From the NCBI GenBank assembly GCA_010909165.1, contig MU008155.1, positions 1,736,001 to 1,800,000 on the forward strand: DNA of 64,000 nucleotides, written 5' to 3'. This document shows, in pieces, positions 8,557 to 45,520 of this stretch. The notes under the pieces are model-generated. The model saw only the letters and a program-made list of their open reading frames with translations. It did not search any database and had not been told where the DNA came from. This DNA comes from Anthoceros angustus (taxonomy: Eukaryota; Plantae; Anthocerotophyta). Both the position numbers and the translations under genes were made by a program. How positions within the stretch are numbered: position 1 is the first letter of the stretch; each line of letters starts with the position of its first letter.

Positions 8557-8951
8557 GGCTGCACCTCGCTAACGTTCGGTCACCTGCAGCTCATCCGTGT
8601 ACCAAGTCGGGAAGCCCAGCTCCTTGTGCTATCGCCAGCACCCAATTCCCCAGGAACAAAGAGACTGTAGCAGAATGGGGAACGGGCGGCCACAGATCAC
8701 GTGACCAGAAGAAGAGAATCGGCTGACAACACACACTGTCCGCCGGGCATGACACAATCCCATCAAGGAACAGCTTACTGTCTTAATACTCTAAGTGAAA
8801 CTTAAAAGCCCGGTTGTGGGTAAATCAGCGTCGTGGGCCATTGCTGTAGGGAAGTCTGCCACTGCCGTCAGGCATTTCAGAGCGTGGGCAGCGGAAGCTC
8901 GGGACTCACAATTTCGTGTTGGGTCCTGGGCGGAATTTGTACATCCCCGGC

Positions 8952-9815
8952 ATGGCCCGGGGATCGAGAAGGGCAGGGTGGCTGTGGGTGTGGGACGTCT
9001 ACGGGTTGGAGAACGGGTGGCTGGTGTTCAGCTTGCTGGTGCAAGGAGGGGTGCTGGGAATTTCCGCCTCTGTGCTGGTGCGCTATTTCGCGCGGCTGGC
9101 GCTGGTCCTGACGGCTTCCCTCCCGCTCCTGCCTCTCCAGCTATGGAGTCTGGTGCTGGGCTTTGCTGTGGCCATGACGGGCCTCCTGGCCGTGTGCTGC
9201 CTGGTCTCAGCTGCCAACCTGCTCTGCTCGGATGTGATGGTGTGTTACGAGACCTCCCATCGGATGCTGGAGCTGGTGGAGGACTGGTCCAAGATCGACA
9301 AGGTGCTGGACGTTGGGTGCGGCCGGGGCATGCTTCTCAATGCGGTTGCGGAGAAGCTCAAGAAGGAGGGAGGCGGCGGGAGGGTGGTCGGAGTTGATCT
9401 CTGGTTGCCCGACAGCAGCAAGCCCCGGAGAAGCATGGCCGACACTCTCAAGACGACCAGCAGGGAAGGGACCCAGGTGTTCGTCACCTGCAAGACCGGG
9501 GATCCCCGGCATCTGCCCTTCGACGATGCCTATTTCGATCTTGTGGTGTCGGCGCTGTGCTTGCACACCTTGGGCAGGGACATATTCGGGACCAGCGGGG
9601 CCAAAGAGGCCGCAGCCGCCGAGAGGTCCAAGGGACTCCTTGAGATTGTGCGGGTCCTGAAACCTGGTGGGCATGCCATCATCTGGGATCTGCACCACCT
9701 GCAAGAGTATAGGAAGAAACTTGAAGAGCTGGGAATGCAGCACATTCAGGTTTCTGAAGTCATCACCGCTTACATGGTTCCCACGCACGTCATCTGTGTG
9801 ACCAAGCCCAGTTAG
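8952..9815 (+). CDS. Class I SAM-dependent methyltransferase (type 11-like) with N-terminal transmembrane segments, single exon
   Basis: Uninterrupted ORF from ATG 8952; motif I VLDVGCGRGMLLNAVA, GRVVGVD, GDPRHLPFDDAYFDLVVS, EIVRVLKPGG; hydrophobic N-terminus. Confidence 0.88.
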   Translation: MARGSRRAGWLWVWDVYGLENGWLVFSLLVQGGVLGISASVLVRYFARLALVLTASLPLLPLQLWSLVLGFAVAMTGLLAVCCLVSAANLLCSDVMVCYETSHRMLELVEDWSKIDKVLDVGCGRGMLLNAVAEKLKKEGGGGRVVGVDLWLPDSSKPRRSMADTLKTTSREGTQVFVTCKTGDPRHLPFDDAYFDLVVSALCLHTLGRDIFGTSGAKEAAAAERSKGLLEIVRVLKPGGHAIIWDLHHLQEYRKKLEELGMQHIQVSEVITAYMVPTHVICVTKPS

Positions 9816-10567
9816 AGCAAATGCTTCCAAACGCGTTATGCGCCTTCTTCTTCATTGTTCATGTTTGGCAGACCTGGTAGGGCGATTAAGCATGATAAGT
9901 CCTTAACCTAGATTAGGATTACCGTCACTTCGGAGGACGCACGCTCAAAACTGGCAGCCTTGTACATCATGCTAAAATTCTCTTTAGATAAAAATATGTA
10001 TGGATCATAGCTATATAGGTAGTGTGTGCTACTCTCCTTTTTCCCTTCAATGAGATAGGCAAGACTACATTTATGAAAGTCTGCGAGCTGTTTTGTAAAC
10101 ACACTTTATGTTTAACTGAGCATACTCTCATTATCATCAAGAGTATGCATGTTACTTACTATCATATGAAATTACACATAAGAACCTTATTTTTTAATAT
10201 TTTAAGTTTTAAAATTTAAATATTTTTAAAAAATGATTATAAAAAATTGTTGATTGGGACACCTCCCTACATGGGACCTCAAAAGCCTCTCTCATATACT
10301 GTACCCCGAGGGGTGATTTGAGAGGGTAATGCCGAAATAATTATTTTTTGAAAAATATAAGGTTCAACATAAATATTTATATTTTCAAAATTTATAAAAA
10401 AAACTAATTTTATCAAATTTCAATATTTATTAGAATACATAGTTATCTAAATACAACTAATAGATATGTGTAGTATGGCATACCAAAGAGGACAGAGGGG
10501 ACGGACATTTTTTTTCTTCCGCAAAACTTTTGGTGTCCGGTTTGGTAACCCGACCAAAATGGGGTAG

Positions 10568-10760
10568 CCAAAGGGGACTCACCAAAGCGGCCACTTGGGT
10601 CACGAAGATAGAAAGGGAACTTTCTTTTTCCCCGCACTCACTGGTTTTTCTCGCACGGATGAAGAATTTTTTCCCAGCAGCGCATTCCACTTTTAGGGTG
10701 CGGTAGGTGGCCTATGCCACACCCACTTTTAGGGTGCGGTGGCACCTATGCCACCTGCCC
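10568..10760. repeat. Left subterminal repeats of the TIR element
   Basis: CCAAAGCGGCCA at 10582-10593 recurs at 22834-22845 and, imperfect and inverted, at 22813-22825; tandem pair CCACTTTTAGGGTGCGGT...CCTATGCCAC at about 10687-10754. Confidence 0.7.
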
Positions 10761-11753
10761 GTTTTAGGTTCATGTCCTAAGAGATTGGAGCAGATGGTTT
10801 AGGCGCGAGAAGCACCGATTTGGCTCGCCACCACGCATGCACGCGGGGCGATCGGGGCCGTGCACACGGACGGGGCGGAGGGGCGAGGTCCGAGGCGGGC
10901 AGGCGACGAGGTGCGAGGCGGGCGGCGGCGAGTGCAGGCGGCAGGCGGGCGGCGAGTGCAGGCGGCGGCGCCTCAGCGGCGGCGCCTCATTGTGGGGCGC
11001 GGCACAGCAGTGTAGTGGCGAGCCCACCGCCACTGACGCGGGCGGGCGAGGCGGGCGAGGCGGGCGGGTGGGGGTTTCGGGATCAGCGAGAAGGGCGGGC
11101 TGCTCGGGCAAGGCACGGGGCGGAGGAGGAGGCAGGTGGGCGAGGGACGGAGGCGGCAGGCAAAGTAGACGAGGGATCGAGGCGGGCGGGCGGCGGCAGG
11201 CGGGCCGAGGGACGACGCTGGGCAAAGGGCCTTCCTCCGGGTGACGGACGGAGGCGGCCACCGCAAGGAGAGGCGGGCAAGGAGAGGCGGGCGAGGCGGG
11301 CAAGGCGGGGCCGGGAGGCGGAGGAAGGCGGCGGCGGGCGAGGCGGGGCAAGGCGGGCGGGGCGCGCGAGGCGCGGCAACGGAGGCGGGCGTGGCGAGAC
11401 CTCGGGCGGGGCGCGCGAGGCGGAGGAGGCAGCCAATCCCCTCCCCATCCTTGCACCAAGCCGCAACTAACCTCGCCCTCATTCCTTCCCCCATGGTGAT
11501 GCCGAATTGTTTGATGCTCATTTCTTTGCAACGGCCGACACGCAGATGGGCCTGTGCCACCGCAGTATTATTGTAGGCTTCCTTTGTGGGCGGGATGGCG
11601 AGCCGCCCACCCTCTCCTCCTCACATGCCGCAGCGCAGCCTGCAGCCCACCACGTGTGGGGCAAGAAGGAGGAGGGTTCCACGATCTCCTCCGAGCTCAC
11701 CCGATCCTAATATGTGGAGTGAGTTGTTTTAGTCTTATGACCCCAAGAAGCCA

Positions 11754-12185
11754 ATGCATCCTTTGTCCCACGAGGAGCTTGATGCGCTTTTGCAAAGATG
11801 CGGAGGACCACAACGACCTCATCCGCCACATAGAGAACTACCCTTGACTTCAAGTTCTTTTCGAGCCGAGGAACGTGGTCGTGTATTTGACCGGACTCGA
11901 CTTTATCATGAGAGTGCCTTCCGGAAGCGCACTATTTCATGCATACCCATTTTGATGGGTGGCCATTGGGTCCTAACGATCCGCGAGGCCTCGCGGTCCA
12001 AGCACCCGAGTCACCGGAGGACTTCGTGGATGGCCAAGTTTCACTCCGACGGCTTGACTCCAGTGCACGGCCGGCCTCGACGCTTATCGCCTCCCGGATT
12101 TCATCTCAACGCCTTCTACGAATTGGACGACGCCAACCATGTCTTGTGGGAGGAGATGAACGACCTCTACATCATCGAGGCGTGA
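11754..12185 (+). pseudogene. Ulp1/peptidase C48-like fragment carried by the transposon
   Basis: CIPILMGGHWVLTI resembles the C48 iP...HW.L motif, followed by KFHSDGL; no catalytic Cys motif found. Confidence 0.35.
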
Positions 12186-12399
12186 TCATGGGGTTAGATC
12201 GGTGGTCATGTGCTTTAGGCATCGTGGAGCAGGGGGTTTTGATAGGACTTGATGTACGAGGCCTTTACGGTTTAGATTTGTAGGTGTCTTCGCACCCCGC
12301 CTCCTGCTTTGACTTGACCAAATTTTGACGCTTCCTCTTTCGTATTCTCACCACTCGGCCGATATCCGTGCCCACGTTTTCAACTTGGCCCTCGGTTCA

Positions 12400-15300
12400 T
12401 GCTTGCCGCCAAGATCGTGTTCCCTCGCCCGCATTTTGGCCCGCTTCCATTCTCCTTGGCCTTGTCAACCCCTTTTTGCCCCGCCTTTCCATGGCCACGC
12501 TTGCTTATTAATTGACAACCCATACAGTGCCTTCTTTTCGGTGTGATTTGGGTCCGCTGGAACTCGCCTTCATGAGGTTCGCCGCTTTGATAGCCGCCCA
12601 CTTCAAGGAATGCGGTTTCACACAAAGGTGATTCCGACACGCCTCCACAATTTTCATGCACCATTGCTCAAGGTCGTGATGTAACTTGTGAATGTCTCGC
12701 CATGCCTTGCGGCCGGACCGCTGAAATCGTCGGACGCAGGAGGCTATTCCATGAGCCCTCACATGTGTCCACGCTGTGGCCCCTCCGGCCCTCACGCTTT
12801 ATCCTATCGGTGATGCCCTGCCCCGCCGCCTTCCCTATCCATGTCTCATTGCCTCCCCGCTTGCACTACAGCCCCTAGTCGCGCCCCGGTGCCACCCGCG
12901 ACGCACCTCATATGAAAAGCGCTCAAGAGGTTAAGGGCTCTCCATGTCCACAGGTGCACCGGTTCGCATTCCACTCCCACACCATCTCCTCGCAGAGGAT
13001 CCCCGTCACCGCAATACAAGCACACTACCGTCACCGCCTATGCAGCGATACATGTCCGGAGGTAATTTGTACACTTCAAGCCCGCCTCAGACGCCATGTC
13101 CTCGCCACTTGCATGTCCTACACAAAACATTTGTCGCCATCAAGAATCGCTGGTGTTCACATTCGTGACGGCCTTGGCCGACGCTCACTTACCCCTCACA
13201 AGAATGCTATCGGAGGAAGCGGTGGCACCTCCGGCAACATTGCGCGCATCGGTCCGGGGACATAGTAGTCGCTGTCGCCTCCTCGCCTCACCCCATATGC
13301 AAAGCGGCCCTACCAGCCGCCCACCGCCTCCTCCGGAAGGCCTCCGCGGACGTGGCCAGCTATGTCATCGCCTCCGACCTCATTTTCCTCACCTGCAAGT
13401 TCCACACCCTAACGAAAGTCGCCACTCTCATGGTGGGCATGAATGTCAAGGAGAATGTATGTGCCAAGGGTTCGTGGTATCCAACTCACTACCGCCCCGC
13501 AGCTCCAACATGTACCTCTTGCAGAAGCCCCACTTCTCCTTCAGCCGCCTCCGGCGTGCTCGATGCGCCTCACACCCACGCACTCCACCCACCAACCACG
13601 CCTGCTATGTCCGCACGGCCCGGCCGGAAGTTCCGCAGCCGCATTCGTGAAGCACATTGCGGCAAATCCCTTCACATGACATCCAAGATCCACCTTACCC
13701 GATTGCACCGATGGCCCCGAATGAAGTTCCTCCTGCTCTCTCGCGGCCTCGCTGGTTCAGTCCTCCTCAACTAGCTCGCAGCAAATCGGACCGAATCCAT
13801 GGGTGCCCAAACCTACGCACCGCCCCGCACGCCTTTGTAGATTGTTCCCGCCCGCTTGTTGTCCTCCAAAGACCGCTTATGTAGTCGTTGCCCCATCTAT
13901 GGTCACGGCACTCAAGTGGAACATGTACATCTTGTCGGACCGCAAAGACAACACTCGCACTAGCTTGCGGCCTTGTGCTGCGCTATCGTGACTCCGACCA
14001 CCATGTGCTCCAAGTTCCGCACACCACACCATGTGCCACATGTACATTTTGTTCGTGTATTGCACTACCACGCGCACCGCGACCTCATTTCCATGGCCTC
14101 CTACCGCATGGCTCGCAATGCGCCGCCACCGCCTCGGGCACGAGCAACCCGCTGCGCTGCCTCGCACAATCCTCACTCCCGCTCACACCCCGCGTGATGG
14201 TCACATTTTGTAGGATGAGGTTGCGGCGTCTTCTATTGTTCTCGCCGACCCGTAGCAGCTCCATCCATCCGGCACCGCCGCCCACCTCCTCAACGTCCGG
14301 TGCACATCCCGGCCGCCTGCGAGCCCTTTCAATGTCCGCCCCGCCTCCTCCGCCCCTCTGCGATGTTCCTCAAAGTCTCCACTTCAAAGGGCAGCCTGCC
14401 GACTGCTCCTTCCCGCCCGCCGCCTGCTTTCGAGCGAGGGCTCGTGATCGCTCCACCTCCCTCCGCTTTCCTCCCTCCATGGATCCCCCTCCGTCCTCTC
14501 TCACTCGGCCCCTCCATCTCCCCTTGCGGCGCCCCATCTCCCTCCGCCCGCCACCCATACGGTCGCCTCACCCACCCCTCGCCTCCGCCATCCTCTCATT
14601 GCCTCCTGCCCCGCCCGCCCGCCGCACCGCCTGGGCCCCCCCGCCTCCGCCCCTCCCTCCCCTTCCTGCACACGCCCGCCCCTCCCCTTCCTCCCACCCG
14701 CGCGCCCACGGCCCCGCCCACCCCGCCTCCACGACTCGGATGGCGCCACGGCCCCGCCTCCGCCTCTTCCTCCTTCCTCGCCTGCGCCCGCCGGCCCTCC
14801 GCCTGCCCCTCCTACGGCCCCGCGCCGCCTCCGCCCCTCCGCCTCCTCCGCCTGCGCCGCCCGCCCGCCTGCCCCTCCATCCAACCCCATCGTCCGACCC
14901 TGCTCACGCCGCCATCCACCCGCGCCTCATCATCTCCTCATCTTCCTCGCAGACACCGCCGCTTATCGCTCGTGACCGCCATCAATCCACCATCGCCTGG
15001 CGAACCCAACCCCGCCTGCTCTTCCGCCGGGCCCCCATGATCACGTAGTGTTTCGCGACTGGCCTATCCTCACCATACCGCCGCGGGTCTCCCGAGGCCG
15101 GATTCACTACTTGAGCCGCGGTCGTTCCCGAGCACGCGCCACTTGTTCCATCTATCGACAATGCGTGGTTTCCTCATCTCCCCTCCTTCACACGTCTTGC
15201 CCTCGCCGCGCGCCCCTGCACTCCGCGCCATCAATCGACCATCGCCATGACAGGCCCCAACCCCGCCCGTTCTCTGCGGCGTCCCCATGATCATTGCGGT

Positions 15301-18300
15301 GTTTGGCGTACTCGGGCCTATCCTCACCCCTCGCCGTTGCTCCAGTGGGATACTTGGAGCAGCGGTCGGGTTGACACGAACACGCCACTTGTTCCATCTG
15401 CGACAATGCGTGGTTTCCCTCATCTCCGGCCGTATGTCGAATAATTCCGCCACGCCACCGACCGTTTCATGAAATGAACGCTATGTGCCTTATTCACTTC
15501 GAACGCTTTGTTGCTTGGATGCCCCCATGCCTAAGGACATTCATGCCGCCTTGCTTCTTTCCACAAATCCACGATACAATGTTTCAAAATACGACCCCAC
15601 CATTATTCCTACGCCTTTCCACCCCACAACTCTACGGTGATAGGCCACGCCGGTGTGTGCACGCTTGAAGAGAAACACGAGACTCTTTGTAGCAAGCGCC
15701 CCTACACTGGAATTTCGGCTCCCATATACAAGTTGCTCGAGGATGACGTGAGCACCGCAAAGCCTCCTCTCGCAAAGAAGCTCACCTTGTCCACGACAAG
15801 ACATACGCACTGTTGTCAAGGAGAAAGCAACCGACATTGCGCTGCCGGCGACCCCCTCCGACCGGCAATTGTCATGCCCCGCCGATCACGCATGCCATCG
15901 CCAACATGCCCATGTAGTCCCCCGCCCGTCCACACATCTGCGAGGCAAATGCATGGCGGTCCATACACGATGCACCGTAGTGTCACATCCCCACTCCACC
16001 CAGCCCACCCATCGCCTTTGCAGTCTCCGCATGCTCCTTTTCGTCATGCATGGCACCGCAGCCCAGGTGCATCGTGTCCACCGTCGCATGGTACACGTGG
16101 CCGCCGCGATCGAACCCACCCACGTACACCGTCGACCATCGTCACCAAGCACAAGATGACTTCTGCATCCGCCTCACCCCACCACCATTGCACTCTTCCT
16201 CAACGCGGCCAACTCCATCGCCTTCCGCATCCCCTTCTCCTTCCGTGTTGGACCCGCCCCAACCCACCAATCCGCCGTAGCCGGAGGCTCCTTGTTCTTC
16301 GCAGGCCTCCGCAATTCAAATGTGTCCATGTGCTGAAATAGATACCCTCGGTGCATGTGCTGCAACCCCTGCTCGTCCACAATCTGCATTGCCCACCTCT
16401 CATCTGGAGCATCCTCCACTTCTGGCATGGTTCCATCCCGTGCACGCACCAAAACCACCCACGAGTCCAAGCCCGCAGCCCTTGTCTCCTCCACCGTCAA
16501 GACATGCGCCACCATGTCCTCCCCATCCGCTATGACGTGCTCGAATGTCGCCCCGGCAAGCGCTCGCGAACACCGGCATGGACGGTGATGATGTCGACGC
16601 CCCTCACTTCGCCATGCGAACGCGCTACCGCCGCCATCGCCGCCCACGCCCGTGTCCTCGCTCGCCCAACGGATCCGCCGCTACCGCCGTGGCCCCATCC
16701 CGCAAAACAACCGCGCATCGAGCCACCGCCGCCTTTTCGCTCCATGCTCAATGACGCTCCATTCTCCTTAGCCTTTGCCCGACCCCCAACCCCAACCTCA
16801 CCGCTCACGCCCGCTCACAGTCTTGCAGCCCATCGACCGACCGCGATTGAAGTTCTAATGTCCCTTCACCCACGTGGTTTCGCCGATTGTCGCGCCTCGG
16901 CCGTCAAACGGTGGTCTTGCTCGCCCGATGACCCGCCATGGCTCCACGATTTCCACAACTCGACTGTCCCAGGAGAATGGAGTGTCCTCCAACGCGCGCG
17001 CATGGACTCTTCCCTTCCGCTTGAAATTGAATAAGGGCATCGCGATTTTTGGAGGCACCGCAGAGGCGCGATGTCATTGCTCCTCCGCCACACTTTAAGA
17101 TTCTCGCACGCCGCCGCCACGTTGTCCTTCTCGACCGCAGCGGGTGCATTAATTCGCCTCCTTTTGTGCACAAGCACCTCCTTCGCCCCACATACTCACA
17201 AGCACCGCAGCCCAATGAACACGCAACTTGCACCATCAATAATTACCAATGGGATGGCATTTCGAAACATGTAGTCCACAATCCCAATCGAACATCACAC
17301 ATCACACAACGACTTGGCCACCTCTCTACAACGGCTCGCAATCTACGCTAGGCCATGCCATAAACCGTGTTGTGAGAAATGGCGGTCGGCACCCTCGCAC
17401 ATAGTGTCCTCGAGTCATACAATGGAAGGAGCAATGTCCCGCTGCACGCCATGGCTGTGGGAGCCCTCCGTCATCAATGGTACTTCAAACACCACAATTG
17501 GCGCTCACCAAAGAACACGCGTCCGTGAATGAAGGTGTAGCTCGCCGTCTGCAAAGACAACCACGACTGCCGCGTAACATGGTCTTCACTGGGGTGCATG
17601 CCTCAAAGGTCGTCCTGCTCGTGAAGTTATCGCTGTACATCCTTGAGCACCGGAGAAAAGAAACCGACCACCTCCAAAGATAACGTGGTTCACAATGGGC
17701 ATCACCGCCCGAAAGGCCCAAGCTGCACCACAAGTCCGAACCCGTCCCCACAAGCCCCCAACATGCAAGCACTTTTAAACAAGACCTCCTGCTAGCCTCT
17801 CGACCATGCTCACCTCCATGCCCGCGGTCCCGACGAAGGCAAAATGTCGAAAAACTCCGGATCCCCACCGTGATGAGGGCAACGGCCTCCTTGATGGCCG
17901 ATGCAGCCGGTCCGCACTTGCCCATGAGGCCTTCTTCAAGATAGACAACACACCCATCACCTCCGGTAGCACGCCATGTCCGCCTTGAAGGCCTTCCTCA
18001 AGAACGATGAGCCCGGCGCATCTTGCCACACCTTCTGCACGCCGTCCATCTGGCTGCCAAGGGCGTGTGCAATTGTGGCCACTGTCATGGGGCATGACAC
18101 TTGCCCCCTTTTGGTTTTGTCCCCTTGTAATCTTCGCCTGTGGCAAATTCTTTGAATGCATCCTCCAAAAACCTGTTTGGCCCATGGGGATTGATTTTTT
18201 CCCACGATGCGTCGGAAATTTTCCTTATGTTTTTTCCCGGTCTGTATGCTTGGCCTATGTGTATGCTTGGCCAATGGAATTGTCTCTACATGCATCATCG

Positions 18301-18700
18301 AAAAGGGTCCTTCGCCTATGGTACAAGACATTGTTCATGACCGGTCTTTGAAACTAGTTATATACATATTTGGCTATATATGTAGGAATAACGTGGAAAA
18401 CAAACATGGTGCTTGGCGGTTGGTATATTTATTTTCCCTCCGCATCGTGGGCGTAAATCATTGGCCACATGGCGGATGACGTTTTGGATGATGCATGCCA
18501 TTACGTTGTCCTCGCATGACCGCACTTCCGCTCGTCAAGGTTGTGGAGTCCGAGGCACAAACGCCAAGGAACGGGCAGCCGGCAACTCGTCCCGCCGCGA
18601 TCCACAACGGCAGTGAACGCTGGGAAGCCCAACTTGCCGTGATGGCGGAACGAATCGGCCATACCTGGGGAAAGAGCAGTAGAAGCGAGAAGAATGGCGA
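12400..18700 (+). pseudogene. Decayed transposase-like region with cysteine clusters
   Basis: TCTSC/TCTFC motifs at 13508, 13921, 14038; ASCHTFC/AVHLAAKGVCNCGHCHG at 18018-18091 (one frameshift); no long intact ORF. Confidence 0.3.
15031..15430. repeat. Diverged direct duplication with period of about 250 bp
   Basis: GGCCTATCCTCACC at about 15061 and 15315; CACTTGTTCCATCT..GACAATGCGTGGTTT at about 15140 and 15386. Confidence 0.75.
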
Positions 18701-19989
18701 GGGGGCGCATAATGGAAGCGCGGACGACCGTGCATAGAACGGGTTAGGCCGCGCTGCCATCCCGGGTGTTGTAAGGGCGATTGGTGGAGGTGATTATGCG
18801 GCAAAGGGACACCTCCCGCCTCCTCTACACGGTGTAGGTGAACTGCTGGATGACGAACACCGGGGTGTGAAGGATGGGAGGGGAGCCGAGGTCTGTGGTG
18901 CGCTGTTCCGGCTGATGGCACCGACGACAATGGGCAACCGCTTTTCCGCGACATCCTTGGAATGGAGGCGGAGGAGTTTGCTGCTGGTGGCTAGTGGAAA
19001 CGCCGAGGAGGTGGTGAAGGTCAAGGAGGACTTACAGTGCAATTTTAACGATCACAACACACGGTAGCCAGCAGAAGGGATTGGTTGTCGCAGTGCTGTG
19101 CCCGTGGCCGCCGAGGAGGTGAAGTCGGGACAAAGGGAAAGGAATCGGGGAGGACGAGCGCCGCCCAAGTGGGATGGCTGCTAGGAAGGAAGGCGGAGGA
19201 GGAGGCGGGAGTGGCATGGATGATGGGAGGACCGTGCCTTCTGTCCGAAAGGTGCGACGCGGAAGGGTCTAGCAGACCATTTTGTTTGCTGCTATTTTTG
19301 CTTGCTATGCGATCACAGCTATGACCTTGGCTGCATTAGTGGCAATGGTAGTAACACCGCGGCGGTGCAGCTTTTGTTTGTGTGGACCGAGACGGTGACC
19401 CGGCCAAGCGCCATTATATGCAATTGGTAGAAACCCCGTAAAATGATTCTAATAGTGATGTGTTAGGCGGTCCAAGATACGCCCAATCGCGAGTGTCATG
19501 TGAAGAGGAAAGGGCTAAGTTATGACACGAACACAAGGAGGGCCAAAAGGGTTGACAAATCGCTAGTGCACCTAAATGTCGGTTGCTATGCGGTTAGTCA
19601 GAACCGGGGTGGATACACCGAGTTCATGACAGTGCAGTGGCGCACGCTGACGAGAACCGCAGATGCCAATTGCAGCCTTGCATGCAGAGAAAATTCGTGT
19701 TAAGGGGCGGCCTCGATGCAGCCGCCCATGCGTATATTATGGCAACCGGAGGACGCCGCCACGCTGAGATAGAGGGCAGCCATCCGCAAGGCCGGGCGAA
19801 TTGGAAACAACGACTGCAAAAAGGCGCGGCGGGCGGGGAGTAAAGTCGAGGTCGATCAAGGAGGCAGGAGGATGGAGAAGGAGACAAGCGCGCCGTGGCG
19901 GAAGCGGCGGAGGGAGCCATGGACGGCATGGTGCCCGGTACTGCCGCGGCGGGGGCACAGCCACTCTTCCTTGGCGGAGGCGGCAGCGG

Positions 19990-21240
19990 CAAGGCGCAGA
20001 GAAGGGGAAGCGAGGGGAGAGCCCTCCCCTTGGCCATGGCGACGGCAATGAGAGGGGCGGCGGCAGCAGGGCCAGAAGTGGGGAGGGCATCGTGCCTCCC
20101 CATGGAGAAGGAGGCGGGGCGGGGACGGCAGAGGCGGCCCCCGGCGATGGTGGCGGCATGGCAGCCGGCGGGCCCAGCAATGGCGCAGCGGGGAGGGCCC
20201 GCCTCCCCATGTCCATGGAGACGGAGGCGGGGAGGGGCGAGTCGCCCCGCCTCTGAGGAAAGGGGCCGCTGGCCTCCCCATGATGGAGGCCGCAGCGAGC
20301 GGGTGCCCGGGCGCAGCGGGGAGGGCACGCTGCCTCCCATGGAGAAGGAGCCTGGGCTGGGCAGAGGCGCCCCCGGCGATGGAGGCGGCCATGGGGCCCA
20401 GCAGAAGTGGGAGGCGGGGCCTCCCCATGGCCATGGAGACGGGAGGCGGGGCGAGCGCCGCCCGCCTCGGCGAAAGGGGCCGGGCCTCCCCGGCGCGATG
20501 GAGGCCGCCGCAGCTGGGTGCCTGTGCAGTGGGCGCAGCGTGGGGAGGGCACGCACGCCTCCCCATGGAGAAGGAGTGGGGCGGGCAGTGAGGCGCCCCA
20601 ACGATGGAGGCGGCAATGCAAAGTGGGGAGAGACCGTGCCTCCCCATGGCGATGGAGGCGGGTGGTGGAGGGCAAGGCGCCCGCCCAAGGAACGGGGCAG
20701 GCCTCTCGGGATGGAGGCAGCAGGGCGACGCGGGCAGCAGCTGGAGCAGCGGGGAGGGAGACTGCCTCCCCATGGAGAAGGGGCGGGGCGGGGGCAGAGG
20801 CGCCTCGGAGATGGAGGCGCAGCGGCAGTGCGGGCCTCAGTGCGCTGGCGCAGCGGGGAGGGCATCGGCCTCCCCATGTCCATGGCGACGGAGGCGGAGG
20901 CGAGTCGCCCCGCCTCGAGGAAAGGGGCCGTGGCCTCCCGGCGATGGAGGCCGCAGCTGCCAGCCGGCAATGGGCGGCGGGGAGGGCACGCCTCCCCATG
21001 GAGAAGGAGTCGGGGCAGTGAGGCGCCTCGGCGATGGAGGCAGGCAGGGGGCCCAGCGGCCTGCAGTGGGAGGGAGGGGCCGCCTCCCATGGCCATGGAG
21101 GCGGGGCGTGGAGGGGCGAGCCGCCTCAAGGAAAGGGGCTGCTGTGGCCTCCCCTGGGCGATGGAGGCGGCGGTGGCGGGGAACCTGTGCAATGGGCAGC
21201 GGGGAGGGGCGCCCCGCCTCCCCATGGTGATGGACGTGGG
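19990..21240. repeat. Very GC-rich degenerate tandem array, unit about 225 bp built from shorter subunits
   Basis: CCTCCC(C)ATGGAGAAG anchors at 20095, 20333, 20558, 20765, 20991 (variant at about 21217); spacings 238/225/207/226/226; GATGGAGGC and CCTCCCC motifs recur several times per unit. Confidence 0.8.
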
Positions 21241-21859
21241 GTGGGAGAGGAGCCGGTGGAGGAGACGTGGAGGGCAGTTGCTCCCCACCCGATGGCGGGG
21301 GGCGAGCCGCCATCCGCGTAGGGAGAGGGAGCGGAGCATTGCGCATTGAGGAGGAAGGCAACCCCGCTTTGGGGACGACGGTCGCTGAGGACGGGCGGAG
21401 GGGCGATACGCCGAGGCCGAGGCCGAGGGGAGGAGGGGATGGAGGCCGCCTCACGCGCCGGGCCCGAGCCGGAGGCCGAGCCTGCGGCGGCATGGCGAAG
21501 AACATTAGCTGGCCGCCATGCCCGACTCGGTGGTCGCCATGGTGGCGGAGGGCGATGATCGCCGCCGCCGAGACCGAGGCCGACGGAGGCCCGCGATGGC
21601 GGGATCGAGGGCGGGATGCGGAAGGCGGAGGGGCGACGCTGGCCGGGGAGCGGACGGCGAGCTGGCGCGCCGGCGCGATCTCTCAGGGAGTGGACCGAGC
21701 GCGCCATCCGCTGAGGAAGGCCGTATGGGAGGAATAACGCCCATCGGGCGCCATCTCGACGTGGAACGGAAGCAGCAGATTAGGCGGAGGCTGGGGCGCC
21801 TGCATGGAGGGAGGAGCGGAGGCGGCACGAGCTCACGGGTGGAGGACAAAGATCCGGCA

Positions 21860-21890
21860 GAGGAGGAGGAGGAGGAGGAGGAGGAGGAGG
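21860..21890. repeat. (GAG)n microsatellite
   Basis: About ten perfect GAG units. Confidence 0.9.
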
Positions 21891-22989
21891 TGGGAGCAAC
21901 CTGTGACGGTGGCGAGCGGAGGCCATGTCGGAAGAAGATGGAGAGCGGAGTGCGCCCAACCCTCCGGAGGAGCGAGCACAAGGGGGAGGAAGCGCGATTA
22001 CGAGCCTCGGACACGGTCCGGCGGAAGCGCTGGGCGCGGTGCCTCCGACGCCCAATGCCCGGACGCTGCCCGCCGGAGGCGCGACGCGGCCAGGATGTGA
22101 GAGAGCGGCGAACGCTGGAATGCTCGACGCCGCCGAGGCCATGGAGGGCACAATTAAGGTTCTCCGCAGATGATGAAGGATGGAGGACGAGGGAAGTAGG
22201 CGGCGTCATCCATTGTGCTCGAGTTGCATCACTAGGTTTTTGCATAGGGGTCGGCGCCTTAGGAAGGCCGCGGTAGGAGATAGGGTTGGATGCTAGCCGT
22301 GCTGGCGATGTGAGCGTGGACATCCTTTTGATCAATGCAATGGCTCTCACCGTGAAATTTGGCTCTTTGCACGCAAAGCATGAACATTCTTGGCAGGAGG
22401 TTGTTGGGCACAGGCGGAGGTGGTGGGTCGCCATCCCCTCTTCCGCTTCGCCGCATCGCTTCTTCTTGTTTGAAAGAGGATCGTGGCTCTCATTGTTTCC
22501 AAGATCGTGGGTTCTTTAAGGAATACACGGTCCCAAAGTCCATAGTCAAGACGAGGAACGGGTCAGGCATGGTTCGAAACCATGGCTGCCCGCCATTGCT
22601 CGCGATACCCATGCCGGTAGGGTTGACAATCAATGGAGCGCCACGCACAGCCGCCAGGGTTTGGTGGCCATTGGATTCCTCAAGAAAACTTAATGGCAAA
22701 AGTGGAAACATTCGAAAACATAGTGTCCCGTCTCTTTGTTTTCAAAGGTGAAAGCCTGAAAATTTTTCAAGGAAACCCGCTTCGAGGACATTGTGTGTGT
22801 CCCTTTGGTGCTTGGCCGCTCTTGGTTAGGGCGCCAAAGCGGCCATGTGGCCATGTGCTGTGAAAAAGAAACCGTACTGGAATGTAGGGTATATTCCTCA
22901 AGATCCCCACGCCTTGCATGGGTTTCGCGAAAAAAAAAATGTCCCATCCCCTCTGTCCCCTTTGGTATGCCATAGTGTAGACCTCCTCT

Positions 22990-23115: not shown

Positions 23116-24904
23116 GTCAACCTAATTGTAATGTGTCTTTCTTGTTTGGGAAAGTGGCTACTTGCAAGCACCCAAACATGGCAACAAATAAACAATCTCG
23201 TCTAACAACCATGTTTCCAAGATTGAGAGAGAGGAGAGGATGTTGAAATTTGCGCGAGATGTGCACTTGCTTTACAAGTGTAGCTCGGACTTCCACATGA
23301 AAAGTTTCTGGAATGACACCTATGAAGCGACCAATTGGAAGACTCTAAGACAACATGTGAAGCAGTTCTTCTACGGATGAAGAGGATCAAGCAAGAGGAT
23401 GAGGATGTCGTGAGCGATACGCACAAGCGAAGAGGTCCTTATACTGGTTTCAAGACCATTTATGGCCTCCTATAGAAGCAAGTGTTAGGAAGCATAGAAT
23501 TTTGGCATTGCATTACCTTAAGACTGCCCATGGAAAGCCGGGGATGGACAATCCATATTCAAGTTGCGTGGATCCTTATACACTTGGTTTGACTCGAAGA
23601 CATGGAGTTGAAACTGCGTACAAGCTTGATTAGTAAAAGTCTGCGACATCGGCCAACTATCAACATTGGACCTTTAGAAGATAGACCTAATTTGAGAAAG
23701 GAGCTTGGTGATTTCTTGAGAACCTTGAGGGATGAGGGAACCAATCAATGCCCCTCTTGTCCAACCCATCTTGAGGGGCATTAATTCAAGCTAGAGCACG
23801 AACTCATTGGAAGCGGAACTTTCGAGTTAGCATTGATTGGAACAAGGAAGTTCATGAAAAGGAACTCTCATGGTCCTACAGAGCATCTACTCTCTGCGAC
23901 TTCTAAGCTCCGGAGACTTGGGAAGATGAAGGAAGAATGATGGCATATAAGTAGCTTACCTCTAGAGCTTATGATATTCAGAACTTGTTGTCAATAGTGA
24001 TCAAACGAAATCCACTTGGTTCTACAAAGGAGAGAACATGGGAGGTTAAAGGACAAAAGACATTAAGGTGTTGATCGCACATACAATCGCATTCGCACCA
24101 CTGCAATTAACGTAAGAAACATGGTAATTTAGGATGCCGAAGGAAAACATGAGATTGATCATGACGGAATCTCAGATCTTGCTATATCAAGAATTGCTGC
24201 TCCCCAACACAATTACCAGTGCTACCATCGCACTACATTTCACAAATCTTGCATTGCTCTCAAACTGCAACAACAAAGTTCCACAATCAATCAAAACACC
24301 TCATGTCCTCTTTTCATGGAAAACTGGCTCATAAGTCCAAATAAGCACCACCTACTTCAAAAATTGTTGATCAACTTATAGTCAAGGACCCATTGCGATT
24401 CTCGATTGCCCTTCACCGAGCAACATTCTCCCTCTCATCGCCAGCTCGAGCTCTCTACGCATCACTCAAACTCCTGCTTTGCGGGCCAGGCGGGCGGATG
24501 CGACTTTGAGGTGTTACGTCCTTCTCATCTCCGGACTCCATCGGTGCAGCCAATAACAGCCTCGCTGTACTGTGATCTCTCGATATACCATTTCTTCTTT
24601 GGCAATTGAGGGCTTTCGACCTCATGAGGCCGCCTTAGCTACCTCTCTACGACTTTCGGCCTCTGTAGCCTCAGTTACTGCGGCGGCTGGCGGAGGCTGC
24701 ATTCTACAACCTCAGCGCCTCCAAAGCAGCCTCGCGAGGTTGCTCCCTTTTCTCTATTTTCGGCATTTTAGACTCCTAAATATTTATACATTCGGCATTT
24801 TAAGCATAATAGTTTTTAGATTTTCAAATTTTACTAATTCTTATTAATTAACGCAGAATCACCCCTCGGGGTCCAGTAGTACATTTAGGAAAAGAGGAAT
24901 GCAC

Positions 24905-25137
24905 CTATTCAAGTAATTTTTAAAATAAATCATAGTATATATTTAAGTCATCCCTAAAATAAATCATAGTATCTATTTAAGTAATCCCTAAAATACATCA
25001 TAGTATCTATTTAAGTAATCCCTAAAATAAATCATAGTATCTATTTAAGTAATCCCTAAAATACATCATAGTATCTATTTAAGTAATCCCTAAAATAAAT
25101 CATAGTATCTATTTAAGTAATCCCTAAAATAAATCAT
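24905..25137. repeat. 34-bp AT-rich tandem minisatellite, about 6.5 copies
   Basis: Unit ATCATAGTATCTATTTAAGTAATCCCTAAAATA(A/C) starting at 24929, 24963, 24997, 25031, 25065, 25099, partial at 25133. Confidence 0.92.
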
Positions 25138-25327
25138 TCTAAAAAAAAACGGATGACTGAGTGGTTTATAAGACCATTAGTAGGATGTTTGAACATTCCT
25201 ATAGAGTTCTAACGTATCGCTATTAATATTCTTGGGTGCAATAAAGAGTACATAAGACTATCAACTTATTGAATAATTAATAATATTCTTCCTATCCTAT
25301 ATAATATGTATCGTTTAGATAATTCAG

Positions 25328-30855: not shown

Positions 30856-31465
30856 TACCCTCCCATCGCAAATAGGTTCACTCCAAAGCGACTTGGTCGC
30901 CGTGCCACAATGCACCATGACTACGGGAAGGTGCATGCATGGCACGATGTAGCGATTTGGCGGTGTAGAAATACTAATGCAAATGTTTTATCCAGAAATT
31001 CATTAATTAATAGTGATGATCCAACTGGGGCAAGGCAAGATTTTGATGAAGAAGGTAGCATGGATGTACACATGGTAATATCTAGATAGTCCCCTGATGC
31101 ATATTTATTGAATTTAGTAGAGACATCAAATGTAGATGTTTATGTAGACTTTTCGGATGATAAAAACACATTATAGAGAGTTCAAACTGATGACAATAAA
31201 AATGCTCTAACTTTGAAGGAACATGATAGAGTATGAAAAAGGAGTAAGAGATATAAATGGGTAGATAATAAACATCCAAATGTAGATAACATGAAAGTAG
31301 TACCAAAACCATATGTCAGAGTAGCATTAACACGCAAAATACAAAAAGAACTCTTAGTTTACTTATGAATAATTATTACTAGAAGCGAATGATGAATGTG
31401 GTTGATATAGTGGTATGAACATGTGAAGTTTCTGATAGAGTTAAAAAATATAATGTGGTATATGT

Positions 31466-34150
31466 TTTATTCAGGAAAAAAACGATGGGGAAAAACCCAT
31501 CCAGCATAGGACAACGAAGGTGGACCCCAGGGGTCAAGTTACCTACTGCTCCTAAAAAACATCGTATGCAGGAAGAACAAATGACCTGCAAACTACGCAA
31601 GAAGAGGAAGAAGTGTCACCTGTTGTCACTGCCTCGTGAAGGATTGCCGTCTAGAGGGCCCTTTTGAAGGGCAATAGAGACTCGCTATCTGAAGTACACT
31701 GTGAAGTAAGAAAGGGACAACCTCGCGCCATGCGTGCGGGTGTGGTAGGATCTGGCACGGGACTTGAGAAATTGATCGAAGTCCGCAGCCATTGCCCCAT
31801 ACGTTTCGAGTGCAAGCAAAATAAAGAAGTGGTCCACTTGCATCCCGCTATACTTTCTGACCTTGAGAGCTATAGCACCAGCGGCAACCCAACCAGGATG
31901 GATGTTAGTGATAACCTGAGCGGAGATGGTGTCTCGAGCAGGGTCAGTAACCACCACGTCCGCCACCGAAACCTGGTCACCGCGGACAAAGTACAAGTCA
32001 ACCCTGATGGAGCGACCTGTTCGAAGAATGTACGCTCGCTCCCTCTAGGCCATGTACCCGCTTTCACGAGATATGGCAAAGATGACATCGCGGATAGCGT
32101 CATGGGTGGCGATGCGATGACCCCATGGGGACAACGAGCAAGGTGTACCCAGAGTCATCGAGGGTAGAGCCGCACTCGCAAGTAAGAAGGGAAGACGCCA
32201 TAGGCTGAAGCAGGCCAAGACGAAATCGCATCGTAGTGATGAAGGTGGTTGGTGCAATGACAAAACCCCGTATACATGGATGAGCCAAAAGCCAAGCACC
32301 TGAGCCCCTTACCAGAACAAGAGCGAAGCCAAGCTCTCGTGGACCTAGGGATGGAGGGGTCCAAGAGGATGGAATGGAAAGCCTGGCCGAGCTGCTTCTC
32401 AAGCAACAACGCCTACAACCCCCTGAAACCATCGGAGATGAACATCGAGAAAGGAGGAAAATTCCGTCGATTTCGCAAAAAGCATTTCTCTGGCATGCCT
32501 CAATGTAGAGGAAGCAGCCTTGGGAAGGGTCCTGTAGTGGGCGATGGCAAAGAGGGCACTACCCAGAGGGTCGCCTTGTCTGGTACCTGTGGCTGATTCC
32601 AAGACAGAAACAACAAATCCCGAAGAGACGTTCTTGTGTTGATAGTAGAGATTGGAAGACTTCTCGTAGAAGCACCGAACAAAAGGTGTAAGGCTCCCCA
32701 TGAAACCACCAGCATCCTTGAGCTCCTCGAAGATGATGCTCTTGGAAATGGTATTGAAGGCATTTTCAACATTGACCTGTAAAACCACTCACTTTGGGTG
32801 GGTGTCAAGGCATGCCTGCACGGCAAAGACCACGGACTCGCAACCCCCCAGAGTGGCAATGCTAAATTGTAGGAGGTTGAGGTGCCGCTGGAGGAGGAGC
32901 CAAGGGCAATAGTAGCTGAGCCACATGAAGGCTTCCAACCGAGTCGACGTGACATGTTAGAGCCCCGGCGCAAGCTTGTCCACGCCCGAGTGAGGAAAGC
33001 AGAGAGATCCGATGAGGCATTTCCCCTAGTGCCACGGTAGCAGCCAGGGGAAAAAAGAGTAGCGGAAAGCCGCTGGATTGGTCTTCAGAGAGAAAAAGGT
33101 CCCAAAGATGCTCAAACACCATTCCAGACAGCCCAGCATAAGAAAGACATGGGCTGAAGAGAGAGCCAGAACAAAAGCCGCTCGGTCCAGGAAGAAGGGG
33201 TCCCCAAGGACATAGTTGAGTATGTCTAGGGGGATGGCATCCTTCGGGGCTAGATGGAGGGCACGAAGGGCTGCAATGGTCTGCATATAAGCAGGGGCCA
33301 AAGAAAGGGCCAGAGAGCCCTGGCAGCGTGGGCATATTCACCTGCTTGACCTAACAACTTGCATCGTCGTAGGTTCGTTGCCACTCCCGGGGCTTGTTCC
33401 ACCTGCAACGCGGATTCCGCTCGAGCCTTGGAAGCCGGCAATGTCTCCTCCTGAAGAGATGCCCAATCGCCGGCCCGAAAGCGACGGAGGCAACTGGCGA
33501 CCTCCCAATGACTAGAAGCCCCACCCCTAATACAACGTAGACACCGTCCTGGGAGTCGAGCACAAGGCAATGCAAAGGAAGACGGAACGCTAAGAGGGCA
33601 TCATCACGAAGGTGCCTGGGAATCCTGCGAAAGATGCGCGGGCATGGAAAGCGGGTTTCAAACAACCCAAGGATGTGATCCTGTTGAGTACGCAACCAGT
33701 CCCGTGATGAGAGAGGCACCCCTAGAAGCACGACACTGGATGCCGAAACCTGAGCCACGGAGCTAGTGGAGGTCGCAAGATGTACTTGGGTAGCCCAACT
33801 AGTCTGGTCAAAGTCCTTATGCATGTGCCCAATGTGGGTTTTTACCCCCTTAACGCCGCAAGAGAGTTGAGCACAGACTAGACAGGGAGTGTCCTTGATG
33901 GTCACAGAAGGTGTGGACCGCCCCATCGCAGAGAGAAGAAATCACAAAGAGAGAATAAACTGCGGACACCAGCTTGGGGTTGACAAGGCCAAGGAGGCAG
34001 CGGGGACTGGAGACAAAGAGTCCTCGACCTTTACTGGACATACAAAGTTTTAGCTCCGTATAGCGAACCCCAAGAGACCGGCCAAAAGGCCCCGCCTAGA
34101 GGGGATGGCCCACCACCACTAGCAACCTACCAGAGCAGTGCCCGCACCTA
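31466..34150 (-). mobile_element. CRE-like non-LTR retrotransposon, longest copy, internally deleted (copy C)
   Basis: N-terminal C2H2 finger CLVC-x12-HIGHMH (33884-33820); LRRCKLLGQAGEYAHAARAL; QFSIATLGGCE...VVLQVNVENAFN; GTRQGDPLGSALF; CECG..LDDSG, RIATHDAIRD, VADVVVTDP, KVRKY, LALETYG; 3' hairpin 31484-31501 and AATAAA 31471-31466; 5' boundary approximate. Confidence 0.85.
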
Positions 34151-35940: not shown

Positions 35941-36058
35941 CAATTGAAAAGATGTACAAAGATGAATGAGTAAGTAAGTAATTGATTATTAATCGTGCTT
36001 ACAAATGTGTTATTGTGTGCAGATTAAGGGAGAGTGAGAGACCCTTAAATCAGAATCA

Positions 36059-36420
36059 TGATAAGAATACAAAGGAGAGAATCAGAGCATTCTTATTGAT
36101 ATTGTATTACTAAGAATATGACAAGTCTAATGATAAGAATACAAAGGAGAGATAGCATTCTTGTTGATATTGTATTACTAAGAATATGACAGGTCTAATG
36201 ACAAGAATACAAAGGAGAGATTCAGAGCATTCTTGTTGATATTGTATTACTTAGAACATGACGGGTATAAAGACCACAATAAGAAAAGACCACTAAGGTG
36301 GCAAGTAAATATATGACAGGTCTAAAGACCACAATAAGAAAAGATCATTAAGATGGCAAGCAAGAATATGATAGGGCTAAAGACCACGATAAGAACAGAT
36401 AACTAAGATGGCAAAATAAA
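36059..36420. repeat. Two adjacent AT-rich tandem arrays (about 70-bp x3 and 55-bp x3) downstream of the integrase
   Basis: GATAAGAATACAAAGGAGAG-like at 36060, 36132, 36200; AAGACCACAATAAGAAAAGA-like at 36269, 36325, 36379. Confidence 0.8.
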
Positions 36421-36707
36421 AAAGCACAAAGGTGGCAAAGAAAAAGACCACAGGTGACAAAACAGAAGTCCACAAAGGTGGCACAATCAAAGACCATAAT
36501 CTAAGAGTGCACATAAATTATAAAAAATATGGTACCATAATTAGAGTCTGATCACCTCAATATAAAAAGATAAGACATCTTAAAGCAAGATTTGCTAAGG
36601 CACGACAATTGCAACTTGAAGATGCTGAAAGGAAGACATCTTAAAGCAAGATTTGCTAAAGCACAATAATCTCAACTTGAAAATGGTGAAAGGGGTATTA
36701 GGAGTGA

Positions 36708-37290: not shown

Positions 37291-37300
37291 GAAATTTTGT

Positions 37301-37672
37301 TTTATTGAGGGAAAAAACGATTAGAAAAAACCCATCCAGTACGGGACAATGAAGGTAGACCTTAGGTGAAAAGAAGCAACTAAGCCCATGACATAAAGTT
37401 ACCTCTGTACCTAGAACATCATATGCACGAAGGCCTACAAATGACGGAGGAAGAGAAAGAAGAGTCATTTGCCATCGCCACCTGTGAAGGAGGAAGAAAC
37501 GTCATCTACCATCGCCACCTATTGAAGGATTGCCGCCGAGAGGGTCCTTTCAAGGGCAATGAAGACTTGCTGTTTGACGTACACTTGTGAGATAAAAGAA
37601 AGGGACCACACCGCGCCGTGCCTGCGGCTGCAGGCGTGGTAGGATTTGGCACATACTTGAGAAATTGATCGA
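37301..37672 (-). mobile_element. CRE-like element, short 3' fragment (copy D)
   Basis: Closely parallels the 3' end of copy C (QFLK..KSYH, VFIALERT, CCCATCCAG(C/T)A.GG.ACAA.GAAGG); AATAAA at 37306-37301. Confidence 0.75.
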
Positions 37673-40659: not shown

Positions 40660-42265
40660 GATTCTCAACGGATCTCCCCTAGCTCCAACCGAAAGTTGCT
40701 CATGCCCAAATTCAAATCCACCCCACCCAGCGCTCTCGTACTGATGGCAGCAGCCTGAAGGCGATTCAAACTGGACGGCGACCGGCGGCGACTCGCAGAG
40801 CTCGCTGAAATGCAATTCACAGATTCACTGAATCTGAATCTGAGATGCACGATTCAGCAGAATATCACGAGCGGAGCGTGGAAGCTATGTTATCTGTCGA
40901 GATGGACGTCACCCACAAACTTTGCAGAGGCAGCCACGTATGGCTACTGGCTGCCCATGCGAGTGGACGCAGGACACCGAATTTGATGGAGATAAGAGTT
41001 TCATGTCAAAAGCAAGTATTCGCTAACACTCTTCCAAACCCCCATCACACTACATACATGCGTGATCAGTGGTTTCAGATATGGACATAGCTCTTTTGTA
41101 TATTATCACAGAATGCCTTTCTGCTTGGACAGGGTCACAGGGCAGCTGAGGAAGCTAACGTGCAGACGCATGTGACGGCAACTGCAACCGCTGCAAGCTC
41201 TGCGGCTTTCGAGAGCAAGGGGGGAAAGATCGAGGTGATTTATGTAAGGAGAAATAGGAAACAGCAGGGAGCAGGGCCAGTGTCGTCACTTGGCCGTTGG
41301 TCCATTGGCTTTGCTGCGGTCGTCTAATAAAGACGTGTTGCGAAGCTCAAGATTCTCATCACACAAGCCCAACGGCGGGCTCCCCCATTCGCTGCGGCAG
41401 CGGGCTGCCAGTGTCAGATGACAAGCACGGCACTGGCAGTACATGCTGCTTTTAGGGTTTGATCGCAGTCTTGCTTGCACTCCGTCACTCCCGAGCGTTT
41501 TGGCAAGAAAGCAGAATAATGAAGGCACATGTTGTGGCCTGCAAACGTGTGAAAAAGCTGCTTTGCGAGCTGGGCTGGCACTAATATCAATCACAGCACA
41601 GCACAGCGGAGCAGAGCAGAGCACATCCCTCGCCTTCCCCCCCTGGCTGGTGTGTGCCGTTACGCCAAGAAGCCGCCTGCCGCTTTCATCACCTCCACCA
41701 ACAGCACCTGCTCATCAGCTGCTGCTTGCTATATTTGCCCCCCCCCTCTACAGCAGGAGCGCTGTTCTTCATTCGTCACCTTCTTGTCCGAGTGGTGGGC
41801 TTGGCGGGAGCGCGTCCGATTATGTAGGAAGCATGGACTGGGCCGGGGCAGCTGCTGGCAAGCAACGCAGGTGCGGTGCTGCGGGCCAGCGGTACGCAGA
41901 CTGTGAGCTTCTGCCCGGGTGTGCTCGTTGCAGCAGCGCCGGCAAGGTGGATGGTGGCAGCAGGGGCCAGAGCTTGTGGCATTTTTGCGCACCAGTTGGG
42001 TATGGCTCGCATTTGCATTTGTTTGTGTGAAGTTGGCATTGCAAGGTTTTCTTCGGCAATGCAAGACTTTCTGCTGCCGCCAGCTGGATAGTTTGTCGAG
42101 GTGCTCACATTTTCTTCTGGCGTGTGTTGTTTGCCTCGGAAACAGAGTCGGCACGGCGGCTGGTCGTCCAGTGGGTGGTGGGTTTGTGGGCAGAATGAAT
42201 GCTGGCTGACCGACGCCCGGCATTGCTGTCGTGTGGGGCTCAGCCCTGCCCGGCTTTCGCACAAA

Positions 42266-45200: not shown

Positions 45201-45520
45201 CGTTCGAGGCTGATGTATATGCATTTGGTGTTATACTCATGGAGATCCTCACAGGCAAAGGTGCAGGGGATATCATATCAGGTAATTCTGGGGCAGTTGA
45301 TTTGCCTGACTGGGTCAGGCTTCTAGCGAACGAAGGACGAGCGGTGGATTGCTTCGATCCAGCTTTGGTTGGCGTGCATAGAGACCAGGAGCCTCCTAAG
45401 GGGATGGATGACATGTTAGCAATATCTTTAAGCTGCATTGCCACTCGATCTTTGCGGCCAAACATTAGGGTTATTTACGAGAAATTGGCTGCTATTAACC
45501 CGTCTTCACAATCTGATTGA
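42266..45520 (+). CDS. LRR receptor-like pseudokinase, GHR1/SIRK1-like, single exon
   Basis: Signal peptide MQALRRIVALLFLAILQLYALA, LRR cap CPQGWSGVSC, many LxxLxLxxN repeats, TM helix, EVLGRSSHGTSYKATLDSGHVLTVKWLREG, LRGYYWGPREHEKL, HGNLKSTN, ADFSLHRL (non-canonical HRD and DFG). Confidence 0.93.
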   Translation: MQALRRIVALLFLAILQLYALADPSDADLLLDFLRGISSNAQALVSWNVSSVDGNGCPQGWSGVSCSEYGRVVGLDLGGFSLGGQISPNSLGFLQQLTSLNLSHNFFSGGVPDDFGSLSALESMDLSFNGFVGNIPISLRNLQTLKNLSLGNNQFDGGIPDEVAGLPQLLQLDLSHNLLSGGIPPSLGDLRNLVSLNLSFNGLSGMVSFDGFLALEVLDLRGNNLSGDVDQSWLSMPLVKTVDLSSNMLTANVSWLIYPSLPSSLEYLNLSNNNFSVALSSPAATFFSASLEVLDVSHNQFTGHLPSIKLDRATTLRFGNNNFSGRVPSELYSQVPLKELDLSANQFAGPMDKVTSTTLRILNLSSNRLLGKLPSKFESISLVDLSRNNFSGSVSDISGWGSTMEVIDLSWNSLTGPLPDDAPAFLAALRSLNLSHNSLSGEIPSGFTNFTRLEGLDLSSNSLDGSVPAFLYNLSITRLILSDNAFTGSIDFPDFGSAAVILSPLVAVNLSSNLLTGPIPPLLMYFPNLFSLDLSNNSLSGPIPSNLSSLQDLHDLDLSFNQLTGPIPSDLGLIPGLIGLNLSNNNLSGTLPASLERFPLSSFANNPLLKLRNGSPISGSGVSHGEKGKRSAVEAGLIGGSTAAAAILLAAGLFLYYRNMSKSQVVMARSPEYIGRIKSEHNHLRAGGLQENESGSPSGSETASSGTVKLKGILKGHSYRASPEPAVEEPKSVEGNGKLGVPLPVPFVHLQPQGYGEAVPPEQPVVLRVCSPERLAGDLFLLDSSLVFTAEELSRAPAEVLGRSSHGTSYKATLDSGHVLTVKWLREGLAKSRKKFIGEARKFGNVKHPNVMALRGYYWGPREHEKLLVSDFIPSGSLAGRLYERTGRRYAPLSWQQRLRIAVDIARGLNYLQLEHQLPHGNLKSTNVLLDGPNLDGRLADFSLHRLVTEAGTANTILNAGALGYRSSELASAKKPKPSFEADVYAFGVILMEILTGKGAGDIISGNSGAVDLPDWVRLLANEGRAVDCFDPALVGVHRDQEPPKGMDDMLAISLSCIATRSLRPNIRVIYEKLAAINPSSQSD

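Follow-up and report, generated by a model that had tools for sequence, protein, structure and literature searches.

Which group of DNA transposons does a 12.5 kb insertion in the hornwort Anthoceros angustus belong to, when its right end resembles that of a CACTA element and its left end does not? The element lies in contig MU008155.1 of assembly GCA_010909165.1. We analyzed the 64,000 nucleotides from position 1,736,001 to 1,800,000 of the forward strand, referred to here as the window, and coordinates are counted from its first letter. An earlier, sequence-only reading had described a DNA transposon with a 6-bp target site duplication (TSD) that mimics a CACTA element and had pointed to a KDZ (Kyakuja-Dileera-Zisupton)-like family. 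Our analysis instead suggests, with a probability of roughly 80%, that the element is a non-autonomous or fully decayed cut-and-paste DNA transposon of the IS3EU/GingerRoot group.

The element represents one real insertion event with inverted ends and an exact target site duplication. It occupies positions 10474-22974 (12,501 bp, 61.5% GC) and its termini read TATGG...CCATA in short form. The left terminus at 10474 starts 5'-TATGGCATACC... and the right terminus at 22974 ends ...GGTATGCCATA-3', with the longer end reads being 5'-TATGGCATACCAAAG... and ...CTTTGGTATGCCATA-3', respectively. The left terminal inverted repeat (TIR; 10474-10527, plus strand) pairs with the right TIR (22922-22974, minus strand) over 46 nt at 85% identity in an ungapped repeat search of the window and over 54 versus 53 nt at a BLAST identity of 87% in a local alignment with three small gaps. 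The first 15 nt of both TIRs are identical while their overall divergence amounts to approximately 11-13% of positions. A second, weaker inverted block continues the similarity in sub-terminal sequence, with 10534-10591 on the plus strand matching 22777-22845 on the minus strand at a local alignment score of 27.5, compared to 17.7 +/- 2.4 for shuffled sequences, none of which scored as high in 300 trials. The weaker inverted similarity reaches ca. 120-200 nt inward from either end and, with insertions and deletions counted, the inverted repeat may extend well beyond 100 nt.

Directly outside each end stands the hexamer GTGTAG, at 10468-10473 on the left and, as an exact match, at 22975-22980 on the right. 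When TSD lengths from 2 to 11 were tried, an exact direct repeat was found at 6 only, for which the chance probability is about 4e-4 given the local base composition. Within the 64-kb window, the 20-nt terminal word is found at exactly two places, inverted to each other, with none expected from shuffled sequences. In addition, the GC content changes exactly at the TIRs, from 27% in the left flank and 42% in the right flank to 61.5% inside. No runs of N were found, and BLASTN comparison of the window with the interior of the element and its flanks revealed no second copy or paralogous site. The TIRs, the sole exact 6-bp repeat and the GC step at the ends bear out the earlier description of a transposon with TIRs and a TSD of 6 bp that is distinct from CACTA.

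The termini of the element agree with the published signature of IS3EU and GingerRoot transposons. IS3EU elements always possess TA..TA termini, usually create a 6-bp TSD and group with GingerRoot in a single lineage supported by a bootstrap value of 99% (Kojima 2023, PMC10045372). Their families are characterized by TAYGG..CCRTA ends, TIRs longer than 30 bp and a 6-bp TSD (Kojima 2025, PMC12730594). Among intact GingerRoot copies in Selaginella, 71 of 77 carry a 6-bp TSD and 72 of 77 have TA...TA ends (Cerbin et al. 2019, PMC6839031). The hornwort element begins and ends with TA, its TATGG...CCATA termini fit the TAYGG..CCRTA consensus exactly, its TIRs of 54 and 53 nt exceed 30 bp at 87% identity and GTGTAG is 6 bp long. 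Its length of 12.5 kb likewise falls inside the size range of 3.9-12.9 kb reported for GingerRoot, a group that often loses its DDE region when foreign DNA is carried (PMC6839031). Within plants, GingerRoot is confined to bryophytes and lycophytes, with copies in mosses (Bryopsida) and clubmosses, and a hornwort host is in keeping with this range; hornworts themselves go unmentioned in the GingerRoot paper (PMC6839031). The literature searched contained no paper that pairs IS3EU with hornworts. The element would consequently be a modest extension at most of the known IS3EU/GingerRoot range and would extend the sparse hornwort record of this transposon group by one large copy devoid of genes. 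A single element alone changes nothing of substance.

No transposase is detectable inside the element. We scanned all six-frame stop-free pieces of at least 38 amino acids (n = 197; 144 of at least 55 and 53 of 38-54 amino acids) against Pfam at E <= 0.05. None of the 197 pieces matched a transposase family, including Peptidase_C48/Ulp1, Transposase_21, KDZ, CxC and rve. Nine weak matches were returned (e.g. Prominin, LEF-10 and NCD3G), in line with the roughly ten that chance alone would give with 197 queries. The identical procedure applied to 150 pieces from outside the element recovered a leucine-rich repeat (LRR) receptor kinase, NADAR, methyltransferases and WD40; the scan therefore works on this sequence. 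Since the copy carries no transposase of its own, we file it as non-autonomous. One piece at 11733-12182 on the plus strand showed a marginal match (E = 0.052) to LZ_Tnp_IS481, a leucine-zipper/helix-turn-helix model that would suit an IS3-type transposase. A word search with this piece returned nothing, and a HMMER search over 1.84 billion representatives gave a single match, a repeat protein (P0001) whose score is the sum over four weak stretches and whose BLASTP E-value is 0.68. No rve signal lies downstream of the piece and, having no true relatives, it was treated as noise rather than as a transposase N-terminus. Searches with the TIR pattern of the element gave 0 matches in metagenome contigs at 27 specified bases and 0 matches in viral contigs. 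At 19 specified bases, two metagenome candidates (L001 and L002) were rejected as chance matches, as their similarity stops right past the pattern.

The only recognizable gene fragment in the interior is a probable relic of the last exon of a HECT ubiquitin-ligase gene. On the minus strand, a 40-residue piece at 17351-17470 matches Pfam HECT at model positions 268-305 of 306 (E = 0.018, 15.2 bits; curated cut-off 23.9). Out of 177,635 PDB sequences it matches just one, the E6AP HECT C-lobe (7qpb_A, residues 75-113 of 114, E = 0.45), aligned in register. Both the catalytic cysteine and the stop codon are in register, the stop following one residue past the match and the cysteine being expected approximately 35 residues before it, and with the stop codon the feature spans 17348-17470. 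We favor the relic reading because both libraries point the same way and the aligned segment coincides precisely with a natural C-terminus. Minus-strand pieces upstream of the relic yielded nothing further and the ESM Atlas returned no usable match for the piece. It is conceivable, with the odds clearly against it, that a HECT gene is a regular passenger of the hornwort IS3EU/GingerRoot lineage and that this decayed copy has kept the last exon. If true, such a transposon family would encode an E3 ligase of its own. The HECT tail adds one minor observation bearing on a possible link of IS3EU/GingerRoot to a HECT ligase gene. The GingerRoot paper mentions neither HECT nor ubiquitin (PMC6839031).

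Several observations weigh against the assignment to IS3EU/GingerRoot. An internal IS3-like DDE (integrase-fold) transposase is absent from this copy and no relic of it was found, so that membership is argued from terminal features and published signatures, not from transposase homology. The interior also differs from that of the group in consisting of GC-rich repeats and the HECT-tail relic, and the HECT match scores under the Pfam curated cut-off. The clear TIRs span 54 nt compared to 100-150 bp in Selaginella GingerRoot. Finally, GingerRoot prefers GC-rich targets whereas the GTGTAG duplication, at 50% GC, lies in an AT-rich site. A copy of this kind resembles Pack-type non-autonomous elements such as Pack-MULEs and gene-fragment GingerRoots, which retain their TIRs and TSD, have lost the transposase and enclose part of a cellular-type gene, here the HECT tail. 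In contrast to Pack-type elements, only 40 amino acids of gene fragment are recognizable and the interior is mostly repeat DNA rather than captured exons.

The reading most readily suggested by the right end is a CACTA/EnSpm element whose left end has lost its first three bases, CAC, and whose true TSD is the 3-bp TAG. The element shares with CACTA/EnSpm its large size and its TIRs, and its right end CCATAGTG is the reverse complement of CACTATGG and is followed by TAG, a triplet that also stands just before the left TATGG. At the right junction, CCATA|GTG is indeed the reverse complement of CAC|TATGG, but the left junction reads GTAG|TATGG and is devoid of CAC, so that CACTA is not present at both termini. 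The TAG/TAG duplication fits only under an assumed 3-bp terminal deletion, which has to be exact, and additionally requires the 1-in-64 coincidence that GTG is found in the left flank precisely where a 6-bp TSD predicts it. This is the argument made in the sequence-only reading, and it holds. As the TSD begins with GTG, the apparent right-hand CACTA is therefore made up of the terminal TA and three bases of the TSD; a false CACTA end can arise in this way from a TSD starting with GTG. The only exact duplication at the observed ends is 6 bp long, compared to 3 bp in CACTA, TAYGG ends combined with a 6-bp TSD are the published signature of another superfamily (PMC12730594), and none of the 197 stop-free pieces contains Transposase_21, Tnp2 or another CACTA domain. 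We consequently regard a damaged CACTA element as very unlikely. A comparably small probability, if anything slightly lower, attaches to the locus not being a transposon, in which case the inverted repeat would have arisen by chance or the assembly would have wrongly spliced GC-rich DNA into AT-rich surroundings. As such an origin would have it, the window contains no other copy of the element and the interior consists of low-complexity sequence, but a 20-nt end found twice with none expected, the exact duplication at the ends, a composition step coinciding with the TIRs and the lack of N runs all contradict it.

A KDZ-like transposon, the identity proposed in the sequence-only reading, has only the unusual TSD length in its favor, as an element that is likewise large. 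Zisupton and Dileera create TSDs of 8 bp while Kyakuja creates a TSD of 7 bp and possesses CA..TG ends without TIRs, in contrast to the 6-bp TSD and TA..TA ends found here (PMC12730594). The relics on which that proposal had drawn, Ulp1-like and cysteine-cluster sequences, are not supported, as no Peptidase_C48, KDZ or CxC domain was detected in any stop-free piece. Pfam holds both KDZ and CxC models. With TSD length, termini and domains all in contradiction, the KDZ reading fails and is scarcely credible. The superfamilies listed in the sequence-only reading did not include IS3EU/GingerRoot, which does fit a 6-bp TSD. A further alternative, improbable but less so than those above, is another or an undescribed superfamily with a 6-bp TSD (hAT6, Ginger2/TDD, Polinton or Dada) that resembles IS3EU at its ends only. 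In its favor, the element has no transposase, and its superfamily is deduced solely from five terminal bases and the lengths of TSD and TIRs. Domains of hAT, polymerase B or integrase type are absent from the element. The ends of hAT elements follow YARNG, from which TATGG deviates at the third base, and Dada targets small-RNA genes. Ginger and Polinton termini, TG..CA and AG..TC, respectively, are unlike those of the element (PMC6839031). Overall, TATGG ends and a 6-bp TSD in a non-seed plant point to IS3EU/GingerRoot and not to KDZ or a damaged CACTA element, which corrects a tempting misclassification.

Family membership suggests how an IS3EU/GingerRoot copy of this kind would have been mobilized. 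An IS3-like DDE (integrase-fold) transposase supplied in trans by an autonomous copy at another genomic site would bind both TIRs and cleave the DNA at the TA...TA ends. The excised element would then be joined to a target cut with a 6-base stagger, and gap repair would produce GTGTAG on both sides. The TIRs of the present copy differ at ca. 11-13% of positions and its interior shows repeat expansions and a local duplication (14977-15181/15226-15427); the copy is probably old and immobile.

The interior of the element is dominated by GC-rich repeats. G-rich short-repeat arrays of the GGCGGGCGA type with units of 9-28 bp occupy 10850-11400 (plus strand), and C-rich arrays at 14450-14900 (plus strand) are roughly their complement, with 70-77% complementarity. 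The local duplication, detected by BLASTN at 14977-15427 on the plus strand, is a tandem arrangement of two copies of ca. 200 bp that are 75% identical. A degenerate array at 19850-21350 (plus strand, 74-76% GC) contains at least 12 copies of a GCCTCCCCATGGAGAAGGAG-type unit at a spacing of 66-220 bp and gives rise to pseudo-open reading frames of 608 and 501 amino acids. Long open reading frames were rejected as genes, namely those of 608 amino acids (19627-21450, minus strand), 501 amino acids (19844-21346, plus strand) and 387 amino acids (13885-15045, plus strand) together with others. They overlie degenerate repeat arrays, GC1, GC2 and GC3 are about equal and hence give no codon-position GC signal, and G, A, R, P and S together make up 56-70% of their residues. 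No Pfam family was found in these frames, and ten open reading frames of the element that start with ATG are absent from a collection of 15 billion proteins. The long open reading frames are by-products of GC richness. Rfam and tRNA scans identified no RNA genes in the element. The ratio of observed to expected CpG is 0.91 within 10474-22974 compared to 0.66 in the remaining window. An old transposon would not usually show so high a ratio, and the GCG-rich repeat arrays are its probable cause.

The element is inserted in AT-rich intergenic DNA approximately 660 bp downstream of a methyltransferase gene. This gene (8916-9815, plus strand) is an intact-looking open reading frame for a class I S-adenosylmethionine methyltransferase with Methyltransf_11/ubiE-type matches. 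At a distance of 1.9 kb from the right end of the element, AT-rich DNA contains a tandem array of about nine 34-bp units that are 65-93% identical in 102-nt registers (24871-25176). Further to the right, a 76-nt direct repeat starting with TGTTTTATT is present at 31463-31538 and 37298-37373, 5.8 kb apart and with 80% identity between copies, and could be a small repeat that is present twice or mark the ends of a different element. Two additional tandem repeats are found at 36058-36281 (three units of 68-72 bp) and 36572-36693 (two units of 61 bp). An uninterrupted open frame of ca. 1,140 codons extends over 42092-45517 on the plus strand, indicating good assembly quality in the window. The strong LRR and protein-kinase matches obtained in the window most likely stem from this frame, which would encode a receptor-like kinase.

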